This document shows positions 6,057 to 52,600 of a stretch of 64,000 nt of DNA, in pieces. Position 1 is the stretch's first letter. Every line of letters begins with the position of its first letter. The stretch is from positions 62,001-126,000 of IMG/VR virus record IMGVR_UViG_3300044591_002232. One strand, given 5' to 3'. Under the pieces are notes generated by a model that saw only the letters and a program-made list of their open reading frames with translations, made no database searches and was not told the DNA's origin. The translations under genes were made by a program, and so were the position numbers.

Positions 6057-6140
6057 GTAGACACTTTCATAACTGTCCACTAATTCACCACTAGACCACC
6101 ATTTACGCCTTATACTGATCTCAGTTAAACATTTTTAGCC

Positions 6141-6611
6141 ATGACCACCAAAACACAACTCCAAACCAAAATTCAAGAACTGGAATCCGAGCTTCAAGAG
6201 TTCAAACAACAACTGAATAACTACAAAGAGACACCAACCATCGAAACCGCCAAAGTTGGTGATGTTCTAGAAGACGGTTGTATCGTCCTTAAAAAAGAAA
6301 ATGGTGTCGCTCTTTTGGTGGCCCCAAAATCAACCGAGGTTTATGTTACTTGGAGTAAAGAGTTTTCAACAGTATTCAAGAAACTAGAAGAACAAGGATT
6401 TAATCCTTCTCAGTTCTTTATTCCAACCGAAGAACAACTGAATCTTGCCTATAAGACCATTCCTCAACACTTCGCCAGCACCGGCTATTGGTCTTCTACA
6501 GAGTTTAATGCTACTAACGCTTGCATCGTGGGCTTATTTAATGGCTTTGCGTACACCAGCTATAAGACGGCTACGAACTGCGTGCGTGCCTTCCGGTGTG
6601 TTACTTATTGA
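6141..6611 (+). CDS. DUF1566/C-type-lectin-fold protein, probable DGR target
   Basis: IPTEEQL...YWSSTE...VRAFRCV signature; NNC/NNT-rich 3' region 6471-6611. Confidence 0.7.
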   Translation: MTTKTQLQTKIQELESELQEFKQQLNNYKETPTIETAKVGDVLEDGCIVLKKENGVALLVAPKSTEVYVTWSKEFSTVFKKLEEQGFNPSQFFIPTEEQLNLAYKTIPQHFASTGYWSSTEFNATNACIVGLFNGFAYTSYKTATNCVRAFRCVTY

Positions 6612-6710
6612 ACCTTGAATTTTGATACTTGATACTTGGGATTTTCATGATAAACTCTAAGAATTTTCTGGAGAAAATAGAGTCGCAAACCTGATTCTTG
6701 CCACAAACTG

Positions 6711-10855: not shown

Positions 10856-12064
10856 ATGTTGGTCCAAAAATCGGTTAAACTTAGAATCTATCCAAATAAC
10901 AAACAAGATGTTATTCTTCTTGAAAAGCATTTTGGTTGCAGGAGATTCGTGTATAATCATTTTCTAGAAATATTTAATGAAAATTACCACCAGGGTAAAA
11001 AGAAGTTGTCCTATGTTGATGCCGCCAAGATTCTTGTTGACCTTAAAAAGTCAGAAGAAGCTCAATGGTTGAAAGAAGTTAATTCGCAATCTCTTCAGGC
11101 AACGCTTAAGGACTTAGATGGGGCTTTTGATAGGTTTGATAGGAAAATAACCGAGTTTCCTAATTATAAGACTAAAAGAAAATCCAGAGCATCATTTAAG
11201 GTCCCTCAGCATTTTGATATTGATTGGGAAAACAATCTTATTACTATCCCTAAATTTAAGACTCCATTTAAGTTTAGTGGAAAGTACAAGGGTGACCTGG
11301 TTAAAATTAATTCTGTTACTATTTCAAAAACTCCTTCTGGAAAGTATTATGCTTCCGTTCAAGGAGAATTTGATATTCAACCAAAACCACAAGTTGAAAA
11401 CTGTATCGGGATTGATTTGGGAATTAAGGATTTGGTCATTACTTCTAATGGCGAAGTTTTTCCAAACAAAAGATTCCTTAAGAGAAAATTAAAAACTCTT
11501 AAGTATATCCAGAGACAACATTCTAAAAAGAAAAGAAATTCAACAACAAGAGAACGATGGAGAAAAAAGTTAGCAATTCATTATGAAAAAGTAACTAATC
11601 AAAGATTAGATTATCTTCACCAAATTACTTCTCAACTCATTAACGAAAACCAAGTTATTTGTATTGAGAATTTGAACGTGAAAGGAATGGTCAAGAACCA
11701 TAAATTAGCCCAGGCCATTAGTGATGTTGCCTGGGGCACACTAGTTAGACTGTTAGAGTATAAATGTCAATGGAACTCAAGAGAACTTGTTGTTATCGAT
11801 AGATTCTATCCTTCAAGTAAAACTTGTAGTTCTTGCAGTCATTTGATGGCGGAAATGCCTCTAAATGTAAGAGAATGGACTTGTCCTTCTTGTGGAACGG
11901 TTCACGATAGAGACATCAATGCTGCCAAAAACATTCTAATTCAAGGATTAAATATTCTGTCTGGTTCAGGAACTGAGTCGGACATTAAACAAAAACAGCA
12001 GGAGGCGTCTTCAATAGAAGAGTCTGTGAATGCTGAAACCGCGATGTCTTCAGCTTCGCGGTAG
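10856..12064 (+). CDS. tnpB: RNA-guided endonuclease TnpB
   Basis: N-terminal HTH (LRIYPN...FGCRRFVYN), RuvC-I GIDLG, RuvC-II IENL, Zn finger CSSC/CPSC, RuvC-III DRDINAA. Confidence 0.95.
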   Translation: MLVQKSVKLRIYPNNKQDVILLEKHFGCRRFVYNHFLEIFNENYHQGKKKLSYVDAAKILVDLKKSEEAQWLKEVNSQSLQATLKDLDGAFDRFDRKITEFPNYKTKRKSRASFKVPQHFDIDWENNLITIPKFKTPFKFSGKYKGDLVKINSVTISKTPSGKYYASVQGEFDIQPKPQVENCIGIDLGIKDLVITSNGEVFPNKRFLKRKLKTLKYIQRQHSKKKRNSTTRERWRKKLAIHYEKVTNQRLDYLHQITSQLINENQVICIENLNVKGMVKNHKLAQAISDVAWGTLVRLLEYKCQWNSRELVVIDRFYPSSKTCSSCSHLMAEMPLNVREWTCPSCGTVHDRDINAAKNILIQGLNILSGSGTESDIKQKQQEASSIEESVNAETAMSSASR

Positions 12065-20509: not shown

Positions 20510-20710
20510 ATGACTCAAATCACTCTAACCTCTGGTGAAATCCTGGACATTATTTCAGTCTTGTGTGATGAAGAGCAGGCAGTTTATGATAATAGCCCAC
20601 ATCTGTCGGCTTATTATCTGAACATGGTTCAACAATTCGAGGCTGTTTATAATAAACTCCAAGAATTGCCTGGTGAAAAAATAGTTGCAAACCTTATTCT
20701 GGCTGCCTGA
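20510..20710 (+). CDS. Hypothetical protein
   Basis: ATG 20510 after promoter 20383. Confidence 0.65.
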   Translation: MTQITLTSGEILDIISVLCDEEQAVYDNSPHLSAYYLNMVQQFEAVYNKLQELPGEKIVANLILAA

Positions 20711-31507: not shown

Positions 31508-33405
31508 TGGCTCTTACTCAGTTTACTAATCTAGATTTTGATCAAATTAAGGTTTCTATTAGAGACTATCTAAGAGCCAGTTCAGAATTTACTGATTATG
31601 ATTTTGAAGGATCTAATTTTAGTATTCTGATCAATACTCTGGCCTATAATACCTACATCAATTCTTATAATGCAAATGCGATTGCAAATGAGGTCTTTCT
31701 TGATAGTGCTACTCTAAGAGAAAATGTCGTCTCTAGGGCCAAAGAGATTGGCTATCTTCCAAGATCCAGAACCGCAGCGCGGGCTAATATTTCATTTTTT
31801 GTAGATACCAATAATTTAACTACTAATCCTTTAACTCTGACTCTTAAAAGAGGAACCGTGGCGGTTTCTTCTTCTCAATTTAATGGAAGAAACTTTACTT
31901 TTTCAATTTTAGATGATATTACTGTTCCGGTTGTTGATGGTCTGGCCTTTTTTGATAATATCACGGTTTATGAAGGTAATTTTATTGTAGAAAACTTCAC
32001 TTTTTCTGGAAATCGGAGATTTATTCTTTCAAATATTGGAATTGACACTTCTTTGATTTCTGTTACTGTAAGAGAAAGTGAGCAATCAAACTTTTCTTCT
32101 AAGTATAACCTTAGTAGGGATATTTTTGAGGTCAGATCTGATTCAAAAGTGTTCTTTATTCAAGAAATTGAGGATGAATATTATGAAATTTTCTTTGGAG
32201 ATGGTATTTTTGGCAAAAAACTAGAAAATAATAACTATATTGACATAACTTACCTAACATCATCAGGTGAAGAGGCTAATGGTGCTCGGTCTTTTTCATT
32301 TTCTGGTCGTATTTTTGATAATAATGGAGGCATTGTTAACAATGACATCTCCAGAATCACCGTCAACACCCCTGCATTTGGTGGAAAATCCATCGAAAGC
32401 CTAGATTCTATCAAAAGATACGCCCCGAGGCTCTATTCGGCCCAAAATCGGGCTGTCACGGCGGCTGATTATGAGGCCATAGTACCTCAAATTTATCCCG
32501 AAGTCGAGTCAATTTCGGCCTTTGGAGGTGAAAACCTGACTCCACCTCAATTTGGTAAGGTTTTTATCAGTATAAAGCCCATAAATGGCGAATTCTTATC
32601 AAATAATGTAAAAGACAACATTAAAGCTGCTCTCAGAAAGTATGCAGTGGCCGGAATTGTTCCTGAAATTATTGATCTTAAGTATCTTTACATCGAATTT
32701 GACACGTCTGTTTACTATAATCCCAATTTTACGGTCTCCCCAGAGGCCCTAAGGTCCAATTTGATTGAGATTATTCAGTCTTATGCAAAATCAACCGAAT
32801 TAAACAAATATGGTGGAAGATTTAAGTATAGTAAATTTCTTAATTTAATTGATGAATCATCCGAGGCAATTACTTCTAACATCACAAAGATCAAAATTAG
32901 AAGAAACTTGAAAGTGGAGGTCAATAAATTCGCCACATATGAAATTTGTTATGGAAATGCGTTTCATATTAGAAATCAAAATGGAAATAATATAAAATCC
33001 TCTGGTTTTTATATTCCTGGGATCAATTCAGTCGTTTACTTGGCCGACCTTCCTTCTTCTAATGATTCTGGAAGTCTCTATCTGTTTACTCTTTCTGATG
33101 ATGAATCAATTAATATCGTTAGAAGAAACGTAGGTGAAATTCATTACACCAAAGGAGAAATAATTTTATACCCAATAAATATTAGAGATACTGTTAAAAA
33201 GTTTGGTTTTGATAATATTATAGAAATTGCAGCAATTCCTAGATCCAATGATGTGATTGGATTACAGGATCTCTATTTACAATTGGATACCTCAAATAGT
33301 ACCGTAAACATGATTGTTGACAATATCTCATCCGGCGCAGACATCACAGGATCAAACTACATATCTACATCAAGTTACCTAGAAGAAAAAATTATTAGAC
33401 GATGA
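31507..33405 (+). CDS. gp6: Baseplate wedge subunit gp6
   Basis: LDFDQIK...DYDFEGS...LAYNTY; RAVTAADYE. Confidence 0.93.
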   Translation: MALTQFTNLDFDQIKVSIRDYLRASSEFTDYDFEGSNFSILINTLAYNTYINSYNANAIANEVFLDSATLRENVVSRAKEIGYLPRSRTAARANISFFVDTNNLTTNPLTLTLKRGTVAVSSSQFNGRNFTFSILDDITVPVVDGLAFFDNITVYEGNFIVENFTFSGNRRFILSNIGIDTSLISVTVRESEQSNFSSKYNLSRDIFEVRSDSKVFFIQEIEDEYYEIFFGDGIFGKKLENNNYIDITYLTSSGEEANGARSFSFSGRIFDNNGGIVNNDISRITVNTPAFGGKSIESLDSIKRYAPRLYSAQNRAVTAADYEAIVPQIYPEVESISAFGGENLTPPQFGKVFISIKPINGEFLSNNVKDNIKAALRKYAVAGIVPEIIDLKYLYIEFDTSVYYNPNFTVSPEALRSNLIEIIQSYAKSTELNKYGGRFKYSKFLNLIDESSEAITSNITKIKIRRNLKVEVNKFATYEICYGNAFHIRNQNGNNIKSSGFYIPGINSVVYLADLPSSNDSGSLYLFTLSDDESINIVRRNVGEIHYTKGEIILYPINIRDTVKKFGFDNIIEIAAIPRSNDVIGLQDLYLQLDTSNSTVNMIVDNISSGADITGSNYISTSSYLEEKIIRR

Positions 33406-36400
33406 GAATTCCCGTTTCAACGATTGTAGATTCCCAATTACCACTTTTTGTAAGAGAAGAATATCCTCTATTTTCGGAATTCCTTCGTCAATATTATCTT
33501 TCCGACAAATCGGAAGAACTTATTCAAAATTTAGATAAAAATATTGATCTAGATGTAGTCTTTAATATTCGATTAGAGGCAATATTAGATCAAAATGTCG
33601 GTTTTAATGATACCACAATTACTGTTGATTCCACAGAAGGATTTCCGGATAATAATGGTCTAATTAAAATCAATAATGAAATTATCTTTTATAAATCAAA
33701 ATCAGAGACTCAATTTATCGGTTGTGTCAGAGGATTTAGTGGAATTACGAAACTTGATAGAAAGTTCCTAGAATTTTCTGAATCAGAAAGTGAGAGACAT
33801 TCAAGTGAATCTGTTGTTTTAAATTTGAGTGCCCTATATCTTCAGCAATTTGCAATACAAACCAAAAAGAAAATTATTCCAGGATTTGAAGATAGAAAAT
33901 TCTTCTCCGGTCTAAATGCATCTAATTTTGCAAAAAATGCCAAGTCTTTTTATTCTTCTAAGGGTTCTGATGAATCTTTTAGAATGTTGTTCGGGGCTCT
34001 TTATGGTAAGCCTGTTGATGTTATCAAGCCAAGAGATTTTCTAATTCGCCCATCAGATGCCCAGTATAGGGTCACCAAGGACCTCGTAGTGGAGGTTATT
34101 TCTGGTGATCCTTATGGTCTGATCAATTCCACTCTTTATCAGGATGCTACTTCATCCATAGAACCAGCCCAGGGGACGGTTATTGAGGCCACCAAGATCA
34201 TAAGAGACAATAAAGAATATTTTATTATTAGTCTTGATTTTGATTATAATCGAGATGTGGATGCATCTGGTACAGTAAAAAGTGAATTCAGTATTCACCC
34301 CAAAACATTATCCACTTCTAGAGTTAATTCAGGATCAGCCCATATTGATGTTGATTCAACCGTTGGGTTTCCAGATTCTGGTGAGTTAAAAATCAACCTA
34401 GAAGATGGAACAATCTTAACAGTATCTTATCAAAGTAAGGTTTTAAATCAATTTTTAGATTGTTCTGGTATTTCAAATACTATTCCAGAAAAATCAGAAA
34501 TTAAAATTGATAATTTGATTTATGGATTTGATAACAATGGAAATAGAGTTGAATTGTTTGTAAATGGGGTACTTGGTGATATTGATTATATTGACAATAC
34601 CTTCTATTATGAGCCAAAAGAAAAAATTAAAATCAAGACTTTAGGCGAAGACATTTCCGAACTGAAGGCTAACAACTGGTTCTTTAATATTTCAGTTACC
34701 TATGATGTTCAGGCAATTATAATAGAAGATTCTTCTAATTTTTCTTATAGGGTTTCTCTTTTTGATGAACATAATTTCGTAATTGGCGATTCCTTTACTC
34801 TCTACGCCTCTGATGATTCAAACTATAATGGAACCATAAACTTTGTAGAAAATGAGAAAATCGTAATTATCACGGGTACTGGTCCGTTAAACGAGATTTT
34901 ATCTTATACCATAAGAAAGAATATTTCAAAAGTAAATGTCCAGTCTGAAAAATATTCTAATATAAGCATCTTTAATTCAAATGTTCAAAACATTTACACT
35001 GATTATGATAAGAGTGTTTATGTTTCGTCACCGTCTCTCCCAACATATCTAGGATTTCCTCTTGAAATCAACGATTTTACTCTGACCATTCCTTCTGGTG
35101 ATTATGATGGCCTAGATCAGATAGTATTTTCCAGACCACACGGCCTGTTTACAGGAGAATCTGTTGTTCTTAAAAACCAAAATTCAATCGCAACGGATGG
35201 TTCTTATATTGTTTTTGTTGTTTCTATAGATACAATAAGACTAGCAAAAAGCCCAGAAAATATTATTTCTAATGAATTTGTTGTCTTCTCTGGGCAAATC
35301 TCAAATGGTTCTCTTGAGCCCCTAGGTTTTAATGACTTAAATTTCAATAGGCTTCCACTTCGACCACAAAATATCATTAAAAAATTAGAATCTCCTATCT
35401 TAAAGGACAAAGAAGAGGTTACTGAATCCGGAACTGTTGGTATTCTAATTAATGGGGTTGAAATTTCAAACTTTAAATCAGAAGATTCATCTTTCTATGG
35501 ACCTATTACATCTGTTGATGTTCTAGATGGTGGTGATAGTTACAATGTAATTCAACCACCCACAATAAATGTTGTTGACACAGTTGGCACTGGGGCCTCA
35601 TTATCTGTTGCGGTTGAGGGCTCTCTTGAGAGAATTGATGTAATTGATCCAGGGTTTGATTATCTTGATGTTCCACAAATTAAAATCACAGGTGGAAATG
35701 GTGCGGGTGCCGAAGCCACAGTAAAATTGGTTTCATTTATTCATTCTGTTGAATTTAATTCAGAGACAGCGGTTGATACTATAAATGACATTATTGTATT
35801 TACCGAGGATCACAAATTTGCAGATAATGAAGAGGTTATTTATAGAACCGACAACCAAAAGAATGTTGTCGGTATTGATACAAACTCAAAATACTATGTA
35901 AAGCCTCTTGATGCAAAAAGAGTTCAGTTATACTTTGCTCTTGATCAATCTACCCCAATTAATTTAAGTGGAATTGGGACCGGAATTCATTCATTGACTT
36001 CGATTAGTTCAAAGAAAAAAATTTCAAGAATAGAAGTCACAAATTCTGGTTCCGGGTATAAAAATAAGAGAGTAAAAATTGTTGGAATTAATACTGCATC
36101 AGATTCTTTGATTATTAATAATCATGGATATGTTTCTGGTGAGATTGTTGAATACAAGACTTCTGGATCACCAATTGTTGGTCTTGCCCAGACTACTCAA
36201 TATTACGTTACTGTCATTGATAACGATCAAATTAGACTTTCAGATACCTCTTCAATTGAAAGAGCCGATGTCAATTATAAAAAGAAAAAGTATGTAGATA
36301 TTTTATCATTACCTTCTGGAAATCATTATCTAAATTATCCCGAAATTAAAGTAGAGCTTTCTGGAAGAATAGGTATTTCCACTTTTTTGGGGCAAGATTT

Positions 36401-39400
36401 TAGAGGGCAAATTCAGCCGGTATTTTCTGGTAAAATTCAATCTATCCAAATAGATCAAGGCGGGCAGAATTATGGTTCAGCAAATATTTTAAATTATCAA
36501 AGAAAGCCCAATTTAATTATACAAGAAGGAAGAAATGCCCAAGTAACTCCAATTATCGTAAACGGTTCTATCTCTAGAGTAATTGTCAACTCCTCTGGTA
36601 GTGGATACCAGCAAATTCCAGAATTAGTTGTTGGTCCGGTGGATACCGGGGTCAATTTAACTCCTGTTATTGTTGAAGGAAAATTAGTTCAAGTAATTGT
36701 TGTTAATGGTGGACAAAATCTTAATCCAGATAATACTATTATTTCTGTAATTCCAAAAGGCTTTAATGCAAAGTTTAATGTAAATATAGCCTCAAGAAGA
36801 GTCAATCTAGTACAAAAATTAATATCGGGTGAAAATATAACAAAAGATGATGGTTTCTTGGCAAGAAACGTGAATTCTCTTGAATATACCCATCTTTATG
36901 CTCCAAGATCACTAAGAAGATCCCTACTTAGAAAAGTCGGAAATGTAAATGTCAGAGATTTAAACGTTGTTCAGGGGAAAGAAATTGCCTCAAATGCACA
37001 TTCCCCCCTTATTGGCTGGGCCTATGATGGAAATCCCATCTACGGACCCTATAGTTATGCAAATGGAAATTCTGGACAGGTAAGGGCTCTTAAATCTAGC
37101 TATAGAATAAAAACCACAACTGAACTAAGTCAAGAAAATAGACCCCCATTATCTATTTTCCCTATTGGCTTTTTTGTGGATGATTACTTGTTTGATGGTA
37201 GTGGAGACCTCGATGAGAATAATGGAAGATTCTGTATTACTCCAGAATTTCCCCAAGGAACCTATGCGTACTTCTGCACCATTTCAAATATTGTTGCAAG
37301 TTCTGGGCCATTTTTTAATTATTTTACTCCAGTGTTTCCTTATATTATTGGTCCAACATATAAAAATAAAAAAACATCACAAATTGACAAGTTTGAAGAT
37401 TTGGGAAATAAGATTTTAAGAAATACCACCCCATATAAACTATTAAATGATACAAGTAGATATGAATTCCTCTTAAATCCGAATAAAATAAAAGAAGAAT
37501 CTCTAGAGATCATAAAAACCAAAACTTCTTTTGTTGATGGTTTTGAAATTGTTGAATCTGGAAGTAATTATAAAGTTGAAGATTCTATTACTTTAAGTGA
37601 TGGGACAATTGCGAGAGTTAATGAAATTCAAGGTGTCGGGGTTTATTCAATTGGTGTTTCTCATACAACATTTTCTGGTCTAGAAATCATTCCATTTAAA
37701 AACTCACATATTGGCCTTTTTGAAAATCCACATAATATAGAAACCACTACCCCCTTTAGACTAAATTCAGAATTTGAACTCAACAAAAAAATAAAAGCAA
37801 CTCCGGTTCAAACTACTCTGTCACTATCGGCTCCTGTTGAACCGGGGGCTGTTACTGGATTCGTCACATATTTTAGTGTAGATGGTAATTTAAATTTCCC
37901 ACTTAAAGAGAATGATGTTTTTATTATTAATAACGAAAAAGTAAGAGTTCTTTCAATTGATTCAAAAGCATCTAGAATTAAAGTGCAGAGAGGATATGGT
38001 GGGTCTTCGGTGGGCATTTCTACTTACCCAATAAATACAACTCTTTCTGAAGATTCAAGAAAACTTACATTTAATATAGGTATTTCTACTTATTATAATT
38101 TTAAATTGAATCGGGAATACTATTTTAATCCAGTAGAATCTTTAGGAATTGGAACAGTAGGTATTTCTACTGTATTTTTCTCAAATCCTGGTCTTGGTGT
38201 TACATTCCTCACTATTCCTAATAAGACTATACTACTAGAAAATCATCAACTAGTTTCTGGAAATTCTCTATTCTATTCCAGTAACGGTGGCAGTCCAATT
38301 CAAGTTTCATTTAGTGGAATTGGGACGACTACCCTCCTAGAAAATCAGGAACTATTTGTAAACAAAATTAACAACGATCTCATTTCAATTTCCACCACAA
38401 GACAATCAGGAAATGAATTAAGTTTTGTTTCAATAGGAACCAGTGATAATCATAGTTTCAAAACAAATTTTGAGGGTAATTTTATTGCAAATATTTCAAA
38501 TAATAAAGTAAATGTAATCACAAATTCCAATCACGGTTTAAGTCTTCTTGACCAAGTAAATGTTAATGTTGTAAGTGGAATTACCACAAGTTACAGTATT
38601 TTTTATAATGATCATAATCGAAGATTCTGTGTCAATAAAAGATTCATAGATTCTATTGATGTTTTAACTAATGTTATTACATCAAATAATCATAAATTTA
38701 GACTTGGCGAAAAAGTAATTTATAATGAAACCTCTCCTATTGGTGGATTAACAGGCCAGGGAATGTATTATGTCATTCCCATCACTAAAAATCAGTTTAA
38801 ACTGGCCAATTCCTATTATGATGCGGTGACACCCCCACTAGAAGAAATTAATCTGACTTCTTCCGGTTCGGGTTTCTTCTATTCAATAAATCCAAAAATA
38901 GAAATTATTAAAAATCAAAATATTATTTTTGATGTTTCTGATTCCTCACTTTCTTATACAATTTCTGGGGAAATCTTTCCGGCATTTACATTAAGGTTAT
39001 ATGAAGATAAAGACCTGATTAATGAGTACTTTACATATAATCTGGCTCAAGAAGGAATAGTTGGAATTGATAGTACCGCAAAATATAAATTAACCACTGA
39101 AAATATTAAAGATAATTTATATTATGCTATCATCCCAACTTCGGAAGCCCCGGTCATTAAAAGAGAAATATCTTTTGACTTAGAGCAAATTGAGGCCTTT
39201 GGTTTACAAAAAATAGATAGCAAATATTCTGGGCCACATGAAATCATTTCAGTTGGCTCCACCACTTTCTCTTATGAACTTTTTGATTATCCAGAGGCAA
39301 ATTCTTATCAAAATTCAATAACTTACACAACAAATTCTAAGACTGCTATTGGACCTATTCACAATATTAAAGTAACTAATATAGAATATTCAAATACCCT

Positions 39401-41828
39401 GCCAGTAATAGATAAAATTGAAACACAATCTGGAACTGATGCTGTAATAAATCCAATTTCTAGCGATATTGGCCAAATTGAAAATACTAAGAAGTTAGAT
39501 ATTGGTTTTGATTATACTGTTGATTATACAATTAGACCAAAGGCAAATCTTCCTCAAATTTTAAGAATTGCGAGATTGTTCCAGTTGGAGTCAGTTACAG
39601 TAACTGAAAGAGGATTTGGATATTCATTTGCTCCAGATTTAATTCTGATTGATAAAACAACGAGAATCCCTCATACTGCGGAGTTAGATTATGATCTAGA
39701 TTCAAATCTGGTTAAAATAATTCAAAATACAAATAAAATTACAGATAATGGTGCTGAAATAATTCCAGTAAATAATGATAATGGGTTTGAAATTTCCGCA
39801 ATCACTTTTAACTCCGGAACAAAAATTGTAACGGTTCAATTAAAAAATCCTTTTAATAGTGTTGATGAATTTCCATTTTCTACTGGCGAATTTGTTTATA
39901 TTGAAGGAGTTTCTGCCATTAGTGGTTCTGGCTATAATTCAAGTAATTATGGGTATCAATATTTTGAAATTCTTTCCGGAAATGCTAATATTGGTGGCCT
40001 GGCTAATTTTACATTCGCCCTAGATCAAATAAATCCAGGAACAGTAGATGATTTCTATACTAGTGGTTTCGCTATTCCTCAGAAATATCTACCCTCTTTC
40101 GATATTAAACTAAAAACCAATATTTATCTTCGGGGTGAAAAATTTAGAACTCTTTCTAATAAGATTGGTGAAGTTATTAATTGGGATGTTGATAATTCTA
40201 TTCTCAAGGTAATTTCAGTAGATAAGATCAATACTGATGATATAATTTTTGGAGTAACAAGCAAGAACTATTCCGAGGTTACTTATGCATATTTACCGGA
40301 AGCATATATTGATATTGAACCAAGTTCAGTCGTACAAAAAGGCTGGAATAGCAATGTAGGGTTCTTAAATGATTCTCTTCAAAGACTGCATGATAGTGAT
40401 TATTATCAATATTTTTCATATGATTTAAGATCCGAAGAACAATATGTGGATTGGACTGATACCGTTGATTCATTAAATCACACTGCTGGTTTTAAAAAAT
40501 TTGGAAATCTTTTAATCAACACGACTCACGATAATGTTGGTTTCAACACAGAACAAGGTATTGGAACAGTTGAGGTTATTAATGATATTCAAAATGTTTT
40601 AGATGTGAATTGTGTCTATGACTTTGATTTGGTCACGGAAAATTATTTTGATATTGATGGTGTAACAAGTTCAAATGAAATCTACTTTAATAATAAAAGA
40701 ATCCAAAATTATATTGAATCAGTTGGTAATAAAGTTGTTCTCATTGACGATATTTCTGATAAATTTTTACCAGTTATAAGAGAAAATAATGTAGACATTG
40801 ATACTTTTAATAAATTTTTATATAGATTTAAAAAGTACACTATTCACATTTTTGATAGAAATGAACCTCAGGATTCTCAGTCTCTTTTGATTAATCTCTT
40901 GCACGATGACATCATTGTGTCAATAAATCAATATGTTGTAAATGATTCCATAAAGGAATTAGGAACATTCAACGCCGAGGTTAATGGTCTAAATATTAAT
41001 CTTAAATTTTTCCCATTTGATATTTCTAATAAAGTCTACTCTGTGAATACTTTTTCATTCAATATCAGTGATTCTGATGATGAACTTGGTTCCATTTCTT
41101 TAGGTGATGTTGTACAAATTAATTCACACAAAACAGTTGGGGTTGGGACAAGTACTAATACAATATTAAGTATTCCAGATTCAAAATCTGCAGCAAAGGT
41201 TCTTATTGTATATTCCGATAAAGAAAATGGAAACTATTATTCTGATGAAATAAACTATGTTCATGATGGGACAAACGTAATTTATAATTCTTATGGTGGT
41301 TTAAATATGGGAAATCCTTCTGGTGTGGGATCATATAATATTTACCTAGAAAATTCAGAAGTTAAAATTGATGTAGAACCGAACAGCTCCGCACCGTATG
41401 AAGTAAATTCTTTGTCCATTGAAATCTCAGGTACAACATCTACTAGCACTAGTTCTTTTATTATTAGTGGAAATAAATTAGATAGTTCTTATGTTGGCGT
41501 GGCTACTACTTCAAAAACCCTGATTTATTCTTATGATAATGATTTTAAGGCAGGTTCGCATCAAATATTAATTCAAGATAATAATTCAAGTTCTATCAAT
41601 TATACGGAATTATTAACCATGTTAAATAGTTCAAATCAAGAAATATATTCAGTGGAATTTGGTGATCTAAATATACAAAATTCAATAGGACAATTGGAAG
41701 TAGAATATTCAAATGTCAATGGCGATTTAGAAATATATTTTACCCCCTTTAGTAGTTCTGATTATGAAGTTAGGGTTTTTAGTAATTTAATTTCACGATT
41801 TAGAAGATCCGATACATTAATTCCATGA
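33402..41828 (+). CDS. gp7: Baseplate wedge initiator (gp7-like), 2808 aa
   Basis: SQLPLFVREEYPLFSEFLRQYY, FYSSKGSDES, C-terminal HTAGFKKFG; synteny. Confidence 0.75.
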   Translation: MRIPVSTIVDSQLPLFVREEYPLFSEFLRQYYLSDKSEELIQNLDKNIDLDVVFNIRLEAILDQNVGFNDTTITVDSTEGFPDNNGLIKINNEIIFYKSKSETQFIGCVRGFSGITKLDRKFLEFSESESERHSSESVVLNLSALYLQQFAIQTKKKIIPGFEDRKFFSGLNASNFAKNAKSFYSSKGSDESFRMLFGALYGKPVDVIKPRDFLIRPSDAQYRVTKDLVVEVISGDPYGLINSTLYQDATSSIEPAQGTVIEATKIIRDNKEYFIISLDFDYNRDVDASGTVKSEFSIHPKTLSTSRVNSGSAHIDVDSTVGFPDSGELKINLEDGTILTVSYQSKVLNQFLDCSGISNTIPEKSEIKIDNLIYGFDNNGNRVELFVNGVLGDIDYIDNTFYYEPKEKIKIKTLGEDISELKANNWFFNISVTYDVQAIIIEDSSNFSYRVSLFDEHNFVIGDSFTLYASDDSNYNGTINFVENEKIVIITGTGPLNEILSYTIRKNISKVNVQSEKYSNISIFNSNVQNIYTDYDKSVYVSSPSLPTYLGFPLEINDFTLTIPSGDYDGLDQIVFSRPHGLFTGESVVLKNQNSIATDGSYIVFVVSIDTIRLAKSPENIISNEFVVFSGQISNGSLEPLGFNDLNFNRLPLRPQNIIKKLESPILKDKEEVTESGTVGILINGVEISNFKSEDSSFYGPITSVDVLDGGDSYNVIQPPTINVVDTVGTGASLSVAVEGSLERIDVIDPGFDYLDVPQIKITGGNGAGAEATVKLVSFIHSVEFNSETAVDTINDIIVFTEDHKFADNEEVIYRTDNQKNVVGIDTNSKYYVKPLDAKRVQLYFALDQSTPINLSGIGTGIHSLTSISSKKKISRIEVTNSGSGYKNKRVKIVGINTASDSLIINNHGYVSGEIVEYKTSGSPIVGLAQTTQYYVTVIDNDQIRLSDTSSIERADVNYKKKKYVDILSLPSGNHYLNYPEIKVELSGRIGISTFLGQDFRGQIQPVFSGKIQSIQIDQGGQNYGSANILNYQRKPNLIIQEGRNAQVTPIIVNGSISRVIVNSSGSGYQQIPELVVGPVDTGVNLTPVIVEGKLVQVIVVNGGQNLNPDNTIISVIPKGFNAKFNVNIASRRVNLVQKLISGENITKDDGFLARNVNSLEYTHLYAPRSLRRSLLRKVGNVNVRDLNVVQGKEIASNAHSPLIGWAYDGNPIYGPYSYANGNSGQVRALKSSYRIKTTTELSQENRPPLSIFPIGFFVDDYLFDGSGDLDENNGRFCITPEFPQGTYAYFCTISNIVASSGPFFNYFTPVFPYIIGPTYKNKKTSQIDKFEDLGNKILRNTTPYKLLNDTSRYEFLLNPNKIKEESLEIIKTKTSFVDGFEIVESGSNYKVEDSITLSDGTIARVNEIQGVGVYSIGVSHTTFSGLEIIPFKNSHIGLFENPHNIETTTPFRLNSEFELNKKIKATPVQTTLSLSAPVEPGAVTGFVTYFSVDGNLNFPLKENDVFIINNEKVRVLSIDSKASRIKVQRGYGGSSVGISTYPINTTLSEDSRKLTFNIGISTYYNFKLNREYYFNPVESLGIGTVGISTVFFSNPGLGVTFLTIPNKTILLENHQLVSGNSLFYSSNGGSPIQVSFSGIGTTTLLENQELFVNKINNDLISISTTRQSGNELSFVSIGTSDNHSFKTNFEGNFIANISNNKVNVITNSNHGLSLLDQVNVNVVSGITTSYSIFYNDHNRRFCVNKRFIDSIDVLTNVITSNNHKFRLGEKVIYNETSPIGGLTGQGMYYVIPITKNQFKLANSYYDAVTPPLEEINLTSSGSGFFYSINPKIEIIKNQNIIFDVSDSSLSYTISGEIFPAFTLRLYEDKDLINEYFTYNLAQEGIVGIDSTAKYKLTTENIKDNLYYAIIPTSEAPVIKREISFDLEQIEAFGLQKIDSKYSGPHEIISVGSTTFSYELFDYPEANSYQNSITYTTNSKTAIGPIHNIKVTNIEYSNTLPVIDKIETQSGTDAVINPISSDIGQIENTKKLDIGFDYTVDYTIRPKANLPQILRIARLFQLESVTVTERGFGYSFAPDLILIDKTTRIPHTAELDYDLDSNLVKIIQNTNKITDNGAEIIPVNNDNGFEISAITFNSGTKIVTVQLKNPFNSVDEFPFSTGEFVYIEGVSAISGSGYNSSNYGYQYFEILSGNANIGGLANFTFALDQINPGTVDDFYTSGFAIPQKYLPSFDIKLKTNIYLRGEKFRTLSNKIGEVINWDVDNSILKVISVDKINTDDIIFGVTSKNYSEVTYAYLPEAYIDIEPSSVVQKGWNSNVGFLNDSLQRLHDSDYYQYFSYDLRSEEQYVDWTDTVDSLNHTAGFKKFGNLLINTTHDNVGFNTEQGIGTVEVINDIQNVLDVNCVYDFDLVTENYFDIDGVTSSNEIYFNNKRIQNYIESVGNKVVLIDDISDKFLPVIRENNVDIDTFNKFLYRFKKYTIHIFDRNEPQDSQSLLINLLHDDIIVSINQYVVNDSIKELGTFNAEVNGLNINLKFFPFDISNKVYSVNTFSFNISDSDDELGSISLGDVVQINSHKTVGVGTSTNTILSIPDSKSAAKVLIVYSDKENGNYYSDEINYVHDGTNVIYNSYGGLNMGNPSGVGSYNIYLENSEVKIDVEPNSSAPYEVNSLSIEISGTTSTSTSSFIISGNKLDSSYVGVATTSKTLIYSYDNDFKAGSHQILIQDNNSSSINYTELLTMLNSSNQEIYSVEFGDLNIQNSIGQLEVEYSNVNGDLEIYFTPFSSSDYEVRVFSNLISRFRRSDTLIP

Positions 41829-46601: not shown

Positions 46602-49600
46602 ATGCCACAGGAAACCAATCTAAACGTATCTCCATATTTTGATGATTTTGATGCGGATAAGAATTACTACAAGGTTCTATTTAAACCAACTCAACCTGTT
46701 CAGGCAAGAGAATTAAATAGTCTCCAATCTATTCTACAAAATCAAGTAGAGCAGTTTGGGAATCATATTTTTAAAGAAGGATCCGTTGTAATCCCAGGTC
46801 AGCTTTCAATTGATAATCCATTTCATGCGGTGGAAATTGAGCCCCAATTCAATGGAATTCCAGTTTCTGCATATTTTAATGAAATTCTAGGAAAAACAAT
46901 CCGAGGATCTCTAAGTGGAGTCAGTGCAAAGGTTGTTTATGTTTTAGATCAAAGACTATCAGAAAGAAATAATTATACTCTTTACGTTCAATATCTAGAA
47001 AGCGGTGGGCCAAACTTTGAAAACAAGGTTTTCCTAGATGGTGAATCAATAATCACAGAAAATTCAATTACATATTCCGGAATCACCATTCAGGCTGGTC
47101 AAGAAATTGTCACAACAATTGCGGCAAATTCAACCTCAGATGGTTCGGCTGTAAATGTCGCCTCTGGTGTTTATTTTGTAAGGGGGGTTTTTGCAAGAGT
47201 AAATTCGCAGCGAATTCTTCTTGATCAATATGGAACTCAGCCATCTTACAGAGTTGGCTTCAATATTATTGAAAGAGTGGTAAATGCTCTAGAAGATGAA
47301 AGTCTTTATGATAATTCTCAAGGTTTTTCTAATTATGCGGCTCCAGGTGCTGATAGATTTCAAATTGAACTAGAACTTAAAAAATATAATATAAATGATA
47401 ATCCGGATAATTTTGTTGAAATTCTTCGGGTAATTAATGGTCAGCCTCAGTTTTTTGAAAGAAATGCTCAATATAGTCTTATCAGGGATGAGCTTGCAAG
47501 AAGAACTGCTGAAACTAATGGTGACTATTATGTAAGGCCATTTACGCTATTCGTAAGAGATTCCCTGAATGATAGGACCTTAACAAATGGTATCTATTTT
47601 GAGGAACAAAGAACCGTAAATGGAAATACACCATCAGAAGATGTGATGGTGTATGAAATTGGCCCAGGAAAGGCCTATGTTAATGGTTATGACGTTGAAA
47701 CAATTTCCCCTAGACTCTTAGAAGTTCCTAAGACGAGGGAAACAAAAACGCTAGAGAGGCAGGTTATTCCATATAATGCTGGTCAATTGATCGCTCTCAA
47801 CAATGTTTATGGGGCTCCTTATATCGGGATTAAGACCGATACTACTGTTAGTTTGATTGATCGTAGACTTGGGACCAACAAATCAGTTGCGGTTGGTACT
47901 ACTATTGGTGTGGCAAGAGTTTATGATTATGTTCCTGAAAGTTCATATTCTGACAATACAAGTATTCTTGATCTAAGACTATTCGATATTCAGACATTTA
48001 CCAAAATTACTCTGACTACTGAAATCACACAGGCAACTCCTGCACTAATTAAAGGAAAACGGAGTAATGCTTCTGGATTCTTGTATCAAAATACATCAAA
48101 TAGTAAAGAACTACTTCTTTATCAGGTCTCTGGTCAATTTTCAAATAACGAACCAATTACAATCAATGGAATTGATAATGGAAGACTTATTAGTAGTGTA
48201 GAGGATTATTCAACTTCTGATATTAAATCCATATATTCTACTTTTAGTGGGAACACTTTTAATGCGGATCTTGTTTTAGAAAATAAAATTCTTATTGCCC
48301 CATCTGGTTCTCTGTTTAATATTACTGCCGCATCGACTGGAATTTCAACAGTATCTTCAGGTCTAAGCACTGATTTTCTACGAACTATAAAGGCAGGAGA
48401 TGTTGTCTCATACGCTGTTCAAAATCTTGATGATGTCGTTTATAACAGAATAGTATCAATTTCACCAACCGGAAGAAGTTTTACCATTACCGGAATAACA
48501 ACTGTTCCGGGTATTTGTGATGGAAGACTTCCTTCTTCTAATGTTACAGTAACCAATATTGTAAAACTAACTTCTTCAATTTATTCTGAAAATTCTTCAC
48601 TACTGACTCAATTAAACCGTTCTAATATCTCTTCTATCAGTCTAGACAATAGCGAAATTTTCCAAAGAAGAGTTTTTTCTAATCAGACTATTACTTCATC
48701 AACCATTCTTCTAACAATAACTGATGAGGATGTCTTTTTTGATGGTTTTGATGAGGATAAGTATCTTATTTCATATTCCGATGGGACCATAGAGCCACTG
48801 AGGCGGGATAAATTTAGTCCTGTTGGCAATTCTGGAAAGCAAGTGCAGTTTACAGGCCTTACCAAGGCATCTGGAACCGCAACAGTAATCGCAACCGTAA
48901 AAAATATTAAACCAAATTCTAAGGCAAAAACCTTAAATAAGGCAAATGTTCTTACTATTAGTAATTCTAAATTAACTTCTTCTGGTATTGGAACTACCAC
49001 ATTAAATGATGGTTTGACATATAGTCAGGTCTATGGAACCCGAGTACAAGATGATGAGATTTCACTTAATGTGCCAGATGTAGTTAGAGTTCTTGCGGTC
49101 TACGAATCATCTTCTACTTCTGATCCACAACTTCCGAAACTACAATTTGGATCGTTCAGCGGACAAACCAATAGTAACCAAGACTTGTTTATTGGGGAAC
49201 AAATTACAGGAAAAACATCCGGAGCAGTTGGTTTAATTATCAACCGAATTGGAGTGGATGAGATTGAATATGTGTATCTCAACACTTTTAAATTTGCAGA
49301 AGACGAGATTATTACGTCAAAAGAATCCAAAATTCAAGCAACAGTTCTTTCAAGAACTTTAGGTGATAATAATGTCACTCAAAACTTTATTTTTGATGAT
49401 GGGCAGAGAGAAACAATTCTAGATTATTCTAGAATTGTCAGAAAAAGGAATGTAATTGAACCATCAAAGAAATTAAAAATCGTCTTCCAAAATTACACTA
49501 TTGATGCAAATGATACCGGAGAATTTGTATCAGTAAATAGTTACCAAAATGAAGATTTCAAACATAATATTCCTTATATTAATAATGTAAGATTAAGTGA

Positions 49601-52600
49601 TTACATTGACCTGCGGCCAAGAGTTGCTCCATACTCTGCGAGTTCAAGATCTCCATTTGAGTTTATTTCAAGAAACTTTGCGGCTGATGGCCAATATTCA
49701 AACTATGTTCTTGCCCCAGAAAATAATCTAATTCTTTCATACTCCTATTATCTCCCAAGGATAGACGTAGTTTTTCTGAATCCTAATGGAACCTTTGAGG
49801 TTGTGCAGGGGACTCCTTCTGATACTCCACAACTTCCGGAATTCAAGGCAAATGCTTTTGATATTGCGGTCCTTAATATTCCCCCCTATGTCTATGATGT
49901 AAAGAATATTCTGGTCAATATGTCAGAACACAAGAGATATCGAATGGATGATATCTCTCTTCTTGAAGAAAGAATTAGCAGGGTTGAAGAATTTACTGTA
50001 CTTTCTGTCCTAGAAAGTAAAACAGAGAACTTTGTTATTAAAGATGCTGAGACTGGACTAGACCGATTTAAATCTGGCTTCTTTGTTGATGATTTTAAGA
50101 ATCATGCGTACCATGATCTTGAAAATCCAAATTTTAAATCTTCAATTGATAAAGAAAAGAAAATTTTAAGACCACTACACTATACAACATCCCTAGATTT
50201 GCAACTTGGATCTGAGGCCATTTCAGGTATAGGGCAAACATTTGATCCAAATGCTGACCAGAGTTTTGTAAGTGATCTTGGGTCTATTGGAATTAAAAAA
50301 ACCGGAGATTTGATTACCCTTGATTATGATGAGGTTGTTTTCCACGAACAACAATTTGCCACAAAAACTGAAAGTGTTACCGCATTCCTTGTTCGATATT
50401 GGTCTGGTTTGTTAAATCTAAACCCTCCATTGGATACATGGGTTGATGAAAAGGCTATTACAACAAATAGTTTTAACAGAGTAAGATCGGTTAACCGCTT
50501 ACCAAATGCTAATATAACGGTTGTTAATAATGTAACAGAAAATGATGTGGTCTTCCGAAAGGCCCCAAATTCTCAGGCCGGTATTCAACCATTTGATTGG
50601 ATTGGAAATGCCCAGAAAAGATTAGCCCAAGGTGGAAAATTTGATGTTGCTGGAGCGGCATCTCAAGGTAGTAGAAGAGCACTTGTTATTGGTAAGAATT
50701 TTAGAGGAGAAACAAGAACTCTTGAAATTGTAAATGGCAATACTATTAGAATCGATGGTCTCCACTGGAGAACCGGGGATCTGGCTCTATTGACCAAATA
50801 TGTTCCCGCAGATGTTGCAAATCAATTTATAAACAGAATGCAGGCTGGGGGATTTGCAGGAAGAGGTGGAGCACTGGAATTCACCCCACCAACAATCGCA
50901 GAAACCAGAAAGACTTCAACTACAACAAAGAGCACTTCCAATACTATTACCACCGTTACCCCAGAAAGAATAGTTGAGCGCGAGACTCAGACATCTTCAC
51001 TGTCTCACTATACTGAGCCAGTAAGATACCTAAGAAACCGAAACATAGAATTTGTTTCTAAAGGTCTAAAACCAAGAACACGATTTTATCCATTCTTCCA
51101 GGGAGTAGATATCAGCAACTATGTAACTCCTAAGTTACTTGAAGTTGAAATGGTTTCTGGTAAGTTTGTTGTTGGTGAGACTGTTGTTTCTGATCCGACT
51201 TTTACCAGCCAAAATGTTTCATTTAGACTTTGTACTCCCAATCACAAAGAAGGTAGATTTAACAACCCAACTGAAACATTCAGGTTTAATCCTTATAATC
51301 AACAATCATTTGAACGATCATATAGTGAAACTTCTGCTGTTCTTAATGTAGATACTAGATCTATGGAACTTGCATCAGAGACTCGATTTTTTGGGCAGGT
51401 TGCTCCAAGAATGAGAATTATTGGAAGAACCTCCGGTGCAGTTGCTACCATTCGACGAATTAGACTTCTTTCTGACAATAGCGGAACCCTAATTGGTTCG
51501 TTTAATGTTCCTGATCCAAATGTAAGAGGAAATCCCCGTTGGATTAATGGTGAAAATAATTTTATATTAATTGATACTCCTTCACTTGATCAAATAAAAT
51601 TAGTCGAATTTATTCCTAATTCAAGAATCAATGAAAGTAGTGCCGAGGCTGAATTTACTTCTAGTGCTATAACTAATATTGCAGAGACAAATATTCTCAC
51701 TACAAGAAACATTAAAATTATTCCACCAAGAAATATTAATACAACAACTATTACTAATGTAACAACCAATACAACGACAGTTTCTCAAAATGTTGTCCCT
51801 AGTTCTGTTCAAATTCAACAACCTTATGATCCTCTGGCCCAATCATTCTATGTGTTTGAAGATACAGGTGTATTCCTAACTTCTGTTGATGTCTATTTTG
51901 AAACTAGTGATTCGGATAATGTTCCAGTAACTCTTCAAATTAGACCACTTCTTGCTGGGGTTCCTAGTAATATTGTAGTACCTTTCTCTGAGGTTACTCT
52001 TACTCCGGATCAGATTAATCTTTCTATTAATGGTTCAGTTCCAACCAAATTTACATTCCCATCTCCTGTTTATTTACAAGGTCCTCAACAACAAACAGTA
52101 AGACAGGCGCCAATTGCAAGCGAATCTTCAGCAGAATATGCAATTGTTTTGATTTCAAACAGCCCAAATTATAGGGTATTTGTTACTGAGCTTGGTCAAA
52201 ATGATATTCAAAGTAGAATTAGAATAACCAAACAGCCTACACTGGGAAGTATGTTTAAGTCCCAGAATGGAACTGTGTGGACACCCTCTCAATTGGAGGA
52301 TCTAAAATACAAAATTTATAGGGCACAGTTTAAAAATGAAGGTATTTTAAAATTCTTTAATCCAAAACTTGATATTGGAAATGGTAAGAAAACCGTCACC
52401 GGCCCTAATCAATTTGAATTCCTATCAAAGAGAATTATTGTTGGTCTAGGTTCAACTGGTTATTCTTCTGCGGTTCAAGAAGGTGTCACTATTACTCAGG
52501 GTAGTGCTTCGGCTACTCTAATTGGAATTTCTGGTAGAATCACAACTGGCGCAGGAGCCGGAACAACCATAAGCAATGTTGGTTTTGGTTATACTAATGG

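Follow-up and report, generated by a model that had tools for sequence, protein, structure and literature searches.

A diversity-generating retroelement target without its cassette in a large T4-like cyanomyovirus from lake water

To our knowledge, diversity-generating retroelements (DGRs) are the only natural machines for targeted protein hypermutation. In the DGR of Bordetella phage BPP-1, a single target gene, mtd, carries the variable repeat (VR) and stands beside the cassette, which consists of avd, the template repeat (TR) and the reverse transcriptase (RT) gene brt, and the VR is followed by an inverted repeat. Short targets of the DUF1566 type form a recognised class of DGR targets, category d or CLec2, which accounts for 14% of DGRs (Wu et al. 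2018, PMC5758913); this category covers DUF1566 and DUF823 as well as Fib_succ_major domains and has Legionella LdtA as its type example (PMC5758913). Targets may also lie far from the RT, as in Treponema denticola, where up to seven remote targets are served by an RT encoded in the same genome (PMC5758913). Such remote targets are not expected for phage DGRs, and a plasmid that carries avd, TR and brt is reported to act in trans (Wu et al. 2018, PMC5758913). RT-diversified C-type-lectin (FGS) domains were not found in a survey of 224 jumbo phages (PMC7824862), and our full-text literature searches returned no paper describing a DGR in T4-like cyanomyoviruses.

The gene described here lies in a window of 64,000 nucleotides, which covers bases 62001-126000 of a virus record of 249,820 bp (IMGVR_UViG_3300044591_002232). 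The record is rated 100% complete by CheckV and has a terminal overlap of 127 bp, which we read as circular assembly. The phage is a T4-like myovirus with genes for the baseplate wedge, sheath, sheath stabiliser and large terminase; in its tail sheath it shows 79% identity to Synechococcus phages B3 (244.9 kb) and B23 (243.6 kb), and the public runs containing the stretch are lake-water metagenomes. Like the targets of category d, the window gene (Table 1) is short and consists mostly of a DUF1566-type C-type-lectin-like domain, with the VR at its extreme 3' end, AAY mutable codons and the motif YWSSTE...VRxxR. Unlike them, it belongs to a lytic T4-like cyanomyovirus of about 250 kb, where it occurs in three dispersed copies without a cassette and is followed by tandem heptads instead of a hairpin. 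The comparison with BPP-1 is likewise mixed: in related phages, the target follows tail-fibre genes and is itself followed by Avd, TR and RT, with VR and TR differing only at TR adenines and the VR closing at its 3' end with a GC-rich boundary, whereas in the window's genome the targets stand alone, their fold is DUF1566-like and not Mtd-like, and Brt finds no match. As with the remote targets of T. denticola, several VRs that correspond to one TR type lie far from an RT, but in the present case the nearest known RT belongs to a different phage.

Table 1. Features of the target gene and its flanks, in window coordinates
Feature	Position	Strand	Remarks
Promoter-like region	6060..6116	+	GACAC (6060-6064), AACTGTCCA (6071-6079), -10-like TTATACT (6110-6116); ATG at 6141
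156-aa gene	6141..6611	+	Intact ORF; helix, then C-type-lectin-like/DUF1566 domain
N-terminal amphipathic or coiled-coil helix, residues 4-27	6150..6221	+	DSSP on AlphaFold2 model
Variable repeat (VR), codons 111-152	6471..6596	+	In register with TRs of related phages; entropy, orthologues
VR 3' end and IMH-like boundary	6582..6611	+	A-free, GC-rich GTGCGTGCCTTCCGG (6582-6596), then TGTGTTACTTATTGA (6597-6611)
Four tandem heptads	6612..6639	+	ACCTTGA ATTTTGA TACTTGA TACTTGG, directly past the stop codon
Decayed copy of another gene's 3' end	6644..6698	+	82% match to window 20646-20700; source gene ends near 20710

An AlphaFold2 model of the window protein (pLDDT 92.5, built on 119 homologues) shows a compact alpha/beta domain after the N-terminal helix. 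The best solved match of this model is the C-terminal domain of Lcl from Legionella pneumophila (PDB identifier 8q4e_A), with an E-value of 9.6e-7, TM scores of 0.64/0.75 and an rmsd of 2.8 over 125 columns at 25% identity, and C-type-lectin-like folds rank next. The window protein has no counterpart of the collagen-like region of Lcl, and we know of no evidence that Lcl is a DGR target. The structure thus places the protein in the DUF1566 fold, while its sequence stays below the curated cut-off of Pfam: Lcl_C (PF07603) matches residues 106-152 with an E-value of 7.6e-4 and a score of 20.2 bits, the cut-off being 34.9, and a precomputed PF07603 match is present in 3 among the 120 homologues listed. 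The C-terminus of phrog_4245 matches the protein with an E-value of 3e-6. A DUF1566/CLec C-terminus, which the first-pass annotation had read from the sequence motif, is therefore borne out by the match to 8q4e_A, the Pfam signal being weak. A word search retrieved 815 homologues, nearly all of about 156 aa and all metagenomic, and megablast of the 4 kb around the gene against GenBank phages gave no match. The N-terminal helix is particular to the subfamily of the window gene, since the cassette-linked targets begin with MGLIIGPTPWWQ instead; it probably docks or oligomerises the protein, a putative small lectin-like binding protein.

The composition of the gene changes in its 3' part. Codons ending in C or T make up 33 of the 44 codons in 111-154, against 55 of 110 upstream (Fisher p=0.0065), and the content of A is 18.9% in the VR region versus 37.3% upstream (p=1e-4). 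An alignment of 119 homologues, out of the 815 found, has eleven columns with an entropy of at least 2.5 bits (codons 115, 126, 129, 131, 133, 134, 136, 138, 140, 144 and 146), ten of them above 3 bits and column 134 reaching 2.5, each with 12-15 residue types, and the residues around these columns are nearly invariant. All eleven hypervariable codons of the window copy are NNY, and hence the enrichment of NNC and NNT at variable positions, noted at first pass as the trace of adenine mutagenesis, is real and is accompanied by depletion of A. Across the homologues, residues that NNY codons can encode (F, L, I, V, S, P, T, A, Y, H, N, D, C, R and G) account for 1300 of 1301 residues at the eleven columns, where Asn is the commonest; in variable columns among the first 110 residues, the share is 57%. 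The window VR also has three single-A codons (114, 143 and 145), at which the columns vary among T, A, P and S, the outcome expected of ACN codons that turn into NCN by mutation of their first base. Hypervariability without any DGR, through diversifying selection and cassette-like recombination acting on the lectin tip of a multigene family, would produce neither such a spectrum nor Asn as the commonest residue, and it leaves the depletion of A at fixed positions unexplained.

The variation is also localised along the gene. Orthologues at the second of the three loci (locus B) differ between the window's genome (G000) and its relative G001 at 38 of 111 positions in codons 111-147, at 15 of 330 upstream and at 0 of 58 downstream, and the corresponding values for the third locus (locus C), compared between G000 and a further relative, G004, are 14 of 111, 5 of 330 and 0 of 58. 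The A-free GTGCGTGCCTTCCGG at the end of the VR does not differ among the clade's six VRs, and the TR of a related viral contig (G007, below) has it unchanged. Beyond it the two kinds of repeat part, with the VRs running on as TGTGTTAC and the TRs as AGTGAATAG; TGTGTTACTTATTGA is accordingly present in VRs and not in TRs.

Complete cassettes of the corresponding kind were found in more distantly related phages. An A-free 21-mer from the 3' end of the VR occurs three times in G007, a viral contig of 37.8 kb which encodes, on one strand, two targets of 156 aa, an Avd-like ORF of 111 aa, a TR with an Asn-rich translation and an RT of 343 aa with the motifs IGNLTSQ and YLDD (RVT_1, E=1e-15). G007 shares synteny, with protein identities of 31-71%, with positions 203-242 kb of the genome of the window's phage. 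The RT of G007 stands at the head of a tight clade, in which 57 clusters are 61-76% identical; the next matches fall to 43%. Phage contigs that carry members of this clade reach 247,454 bp. The gene order of the cassette is always the same, namely one or more tail-fibre-like ORFs, one or two targets, bAvd (PF22296), TR, RT and a 2OG-Fe(II) oxygenase, and it recurs in the loci L072, L074, L075-80 and L161. Between cassette-linked VRs and the TR of their cassette there are 10-22 differences at adenine sites and 0-2 elsewhere, a yardstick for an active system. One cassette-linked target (L075, 1364-1789) carries an insertion of 1 nt in its VR and a premature stop, its neighbours on sister contigs being intact; this insertion may be a by-product of homing.

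Both the RT clade and the target family are absent from 50,697 GenBank phage records. The large metagenomic DGR catalogue (PMC8144416) may contain the RTs of this clade without comment. Among further probes, an exact 18-mer across YWSSTE retrieved from viral contigs only VRs and two chance DUF1566 genes and no TR, a TR-specific 21-mer at the junction matched only G007, an IUPAC pattern for a TR-like sequence gave no match in JGI metagenome contigs, and an RT-profile scan of metagenome contigs returned mostly generic DGR RTs of about 40% identity with one partial clade member. A locus that surfaced as a by-product in a human-gut metagenome (L156) was left out of the analysis. In a DGR-positive contig of 247 kb, no copy of the window subfamily was found within 10 kb of the syntenic place after the helicase.

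All sampled TRs align to the window VR without gaps, each hypervariable codon being AAY in the TR. For L078/79, the translated TR is exactly the consensus of the window protein's family, with Asn at each hypervariable column. A contig of 227 kb carries a member of this subfamily, which differs from the L078/79 TR at 17 A sites and 3 others. The window copy is of a second type (Val130, Ala137), which it has in common with the B copy of G001, and it differs from the best sampled TRs by 17-20 A-site differences plus 13-14 non-A mismatches. Since no sampled TR fits the window VR at all non-A sites, we infer a cognate TR from the VRs themselves. One candidate, the TR of L161, was found via a 26-mer predicted for the 'type-1' TR and was rejected with 14 non-A mismatches overall; its match to the window VR begins only at codon 123. 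The window VR and the VR of G001_B show 25 differences, 20 of which fall on TR-adenine sites (p=1.4e-7), a site being counted as such when four or more of the five TRs have A there, as holds for 36 of 126 sites. The two VRs have 14-15 non-A mismatches to the sampled TRs, and 13 of these are common to both, so that, given the common TR deduced in this way, the window VR has one private non-A change (codon 132). The concentration of the differences on adenine sites together with the common non-A mismatches suggests that both VRs were written from one unsampled TR.

Thus, the window gene is a true DGR target: it has a 3'-end VR, whose features are borne by codons 112-147, in a C-type-lectin-like fold, an NNY spectrum and a GC-rich 3' boundary, and the first-pass proposal of a DGR variable repeat at its 3' end, within a DUF1566/CLec fold, is supported by the spectrum, the alignment with TRs and the fold. 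What it lacks of the usual features of such targets are a TR in the same genome, an RT and Avd nearby, and a hairpin downstream of the VR. The diversifier of the window gene probably belongs to the DGR clade of related T4-like cyanomyoviruses. Selection and recombination by themselves leave two further observations unexplained, the occurrence of AAY in the relatives' TRs at exactly the hypervariable codons and the placement of 20 of 25 differences on TR-adenine sites.

The first-pass annotation had reported no TR or RT in the window, which is true and extends to the whole 249.8-kb genome; its proposal that the DGR lies elsewhere in that genome fails, as neither RT, Avd, TR nor their remnants were found by profiles, phmmer, tblastn or blastn. 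Profiles of RVT_1 and Avd (PF05635) gave no match in six frames of the genome, BPP-1 Brt and Avd gave none by phmmer (--max) among all 940 open frames of at least 60 aa, a scan of the genome frames for the YxDD motif found none, and the clade's own RT and Avd gave none by tblastn at E<=1. With the same threshold, the genes of the DGR island match only the flanking helicase (68%) and RNA ligase (80%) in the window's genome. The suggested genome-wide search for a near copy of 6471-6611 beside an RT, carried out by blastn of the gene with word size 7, recovered just the three copies of the gene and no fourth VR-like copy, from which it follows that the genome holds no TR. The interval equivalent to the cassette, from a fibre-like gene (genome 243636-248765) to the helicase (genome 6357-7589), contains unrelated ORFs. 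G001, at 94% identity, is collinear over most of the equivalent interval and likewise has no cassette, and G005, a circularly assembled relative of 243 kb, has targets and no RT; two RT-less relatives are incomplete contigs. The cassette would have been either lost from the window's genome or never received by it.

The first-pass annotation had offered the host as another seat of the DGR, and cyanobacteria are known to be rich in DGRs, so that a TR and RT encoded by freshwater picocyanobacteria might write the phage VRs. A gapped pattern that fits the VRs and TRs found nothing of the kind in 185,579 bacterial and archaeal species genomes, and the closest RTs, which are 61-76% identical to each other before identity drops to 43%, lie in phage contexts beside tail-fibre-like genes on contigs of up to 247 kb. 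We therefore regard a host-encoded system as extremely improbable, and this part of the earlier proposal is not sustained.

The genome contains the window gene (A) and two paralogues, B (genome 12276-12746) and C (genome 50780-51250), all of 156 aa. In codons 1-96, A and B are 5% different and C is 15-17% different from them, mostly at synonymous sites; all three are near-identical in codons 79-111 and 148-157 and in the first bases past the stop; and in codons 112-147, A differs from B or C by 34%, whereas B and C differ by 11%. B and C have eleven identical codons in the core of the VR (130-140). The paralogues are thus mosaics, with A like B in codons 1-96 and B like C in codons 97-147. Where orthologues lack an RT in their clade, change is still faster in the VR than elsewhere in the gene, with a weak bias towards A sites (7 of 14 changes, p=0.07), and this weak bias together with the eleven codons common to B and C is compatible with recent change by gene conversion, which it resembles more than fresh mutagenesis. 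In G005, both VRs show indels and 12-17 non-A mismatches relative to the TR of L074. The mosaic structure and the share of non-A sites among recent orthologue changes, about half, are what selection and recombination without a DGR would lead one to expect. As the origin of the variation, this explanation is largely refuted by the residue spectrum and the TR matches, and we consider it highly unlikely as an account of the gene as a whole; as the current mode of change, recombination under selection is likely.

Taken together, we think it probable, with good confidence, that the window gene is an orphan DGR target, its VR having been written by retrohoming from a cassette that resides in related phages and its alleles being now frozen and reshuffled by gene conversion and phage recombination. 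On this reading, the ligand-facing C-terminal 36 codons of the gene would constitute the VR; an RNA copy of the TR, rich in Asn codons, would be reverse-transcribed with errors at adenines, and the mutated cDNA would replace the VR as far as the conserved A-free, GC-rich boundary. The writing cassette would be the bAvd, TR and 343-aa RT of related freshwater T4-like cyanomyoviruses. Given three dispersed targets and no cassette in the genome, the VRs of the window's genome are read as frozen alleles that would undergo no ongoing adenine mutagenesis, and their present reshuffling would come from gene conversion between the paralogues and from recombination with other phages. The first-pass annotation had the protein being hypervaried now "or was recently"; the second half of this statement is the better one.

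The 3' flank of the gene provides a further link with the cassette-bearing phages. Three to five tandem heptads (consensus NNYTTGW) follow directly after the stop codon in every target of the clade (20 targets in 9 genomes), in orphan and cassette-linked targets alike (for example, L072, L075-77, L049 in G007 and L036), and they would serve target recognition. A post-VR hairpin was sought in the window copy and in cassette-adjacent targets, and no stable fold was found (z-scores of +1.1 to +1.3, worse than shuffled sequences). The perfect inverted repeat ATTTTCT-GG-AGAAAAT, taken at first pass for the hairpin that often follows a DGR variable repeat, is present exactly at 6663-6678, 52 nt past the stop, and is unique in the genome; the role assigned to it does not hold. 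The repeat lies within the 55 nt of a decayed copy of another gene's 3' end, which also contains a stop codon, and it is absent from paralogues B and C and from all cassette-linked targets; its fold is weak, at -4.9 kcal/mol, a value reached by 4 of 200 shuffled sequences, and it does not belong to the DGR system.

The conservation of this flank bears on whether the target is still diversified in trans, with cDNA derived from the TR of a co-infecting DGR-positive relative homing into the orphan VRs. The 3' boundary and the first 14 nt past the stop are identical between the window's genome and cassette-adjacent targets in genomes that are only about 68-80% identical to it in protein elsewhere, the 14 nt being unchanged in a DGR-positive genome at about 70%; the window VR has a single private non-A change against its deduced TR, which is also what active systems show; targets without an RT are held by two circularly assembled genomes (G000 and G005); lake samples that are the same or sisters yield contigs with and without the DGR; and Avd, TR and RT are, as cited above, reported to act from a plasmid. 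Against this, the window allele or the G001_B allele is found letter for letter in contigs of four lake runs, unchanged across several lake metagenomes of different years, though the runs were examined as assembled contigs, which cannot show rare variants, and paralogues map onto one another. In one sample (JGI 3300075147), four contigs with different gene neighbourhoods (L037-L040) carry an identical 166-aa homologue, which indicates that VR alleles can be stable across strains. Further, recent orthologue differences in the RT-less clade are not cleanly A-specific, and no cognate TR came out of the JGI contig pattern, the TR comparisons or L161. We therefore judge rewriting in trans to be unlikely as the present state of the gene; that the orphan VRs are kept competent, through their A-free boundary and heptad flank, for being rewritten by a co-infecting relative's cassette is similarly doubtful. 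If it were true, the retroelement would be a shared mutator acting at the level of the population across phage genomes and not a private one, and whether orphan VRs can be rewritten in trans is the more interesting question.

With frozen alleles as the preferred reading, the findings place this DGR clade in large lytic T4-like cyanophages of lakes, where the cassette is patchy, at least two circularly assembled genomes holding targets without it. DGR-positive and DGR-negative relatives with the same targets form a natural contrast that may be used to study the rate at which frozen VRs decay, homing across genomes in co-infection and the replacement of the hairpin by heptads. For annotation, it follows that a DGR target can be recognised from a single genome that has neither TR nor RT.

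The element AACTGTCCA upstream of the gene has 15 copies on the genome's + strand and a single one on its - strand, mostly after GACAC and 60-70 nt upstream of small ORFs, including paralogue B. The full arrangement of GACAC, AACTGTCCA and TTATACT, the -10-like element lying about 31 nt on, is found ahead of copies A and B and of a dozen other small ORFs on the + strand, and it is probably a promoter class specific to the phage, as far as its sequence and distribution indicate. The motif supports a promoter shared among phage genes, and the early expression proposed at first pass, which depends on this motif common to many small genes, is putative. GACAC-N(6-8)-AACTGTCCA is also seen, for example, at window 3917, 4169, 14442, 15201 and 18728, and TTATACTGATCTCAGTT lies about 30-40 nt downstream of the motif at several sites, before small ORFs. 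The view of the product as a non-structural protein, also held at first pass, is doubtful because cassette-linked paralogues come directly after tail-fibre-like genes; a virion-associated adhesin appears at least as likely.

Some observations on the surroundings of the gene may be added. In two close relatives, the locus of the window gene is a pseudogene (L016, 1501-1690, in G001; L015/L017 in G004), with the first 71 nt running out of frame into a fragment of the VR, and retains its 3' boundary and heptads intact. An ORF for an IS605/TnpB-type transposase lies at window 10856-12064 (phrog_506, E=7e-129); the TnpB of a relative matches further places in the window's genome, and similar genes flank target homologues in relatives. 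Very large ORFs of 2808 and 2577 aa are found among the baseplate-wedge genes at window 33402-41828 and 46602-54335, and fibre-like ORFs of 2029 and 1709 aa at genome 236642-248765. Finally, long tandem repeats (of about 80 and 141 nt) are present inside ORFs at genome 181-760 and 1394-2362, in the interval that holds the DGR cassette in relatives.
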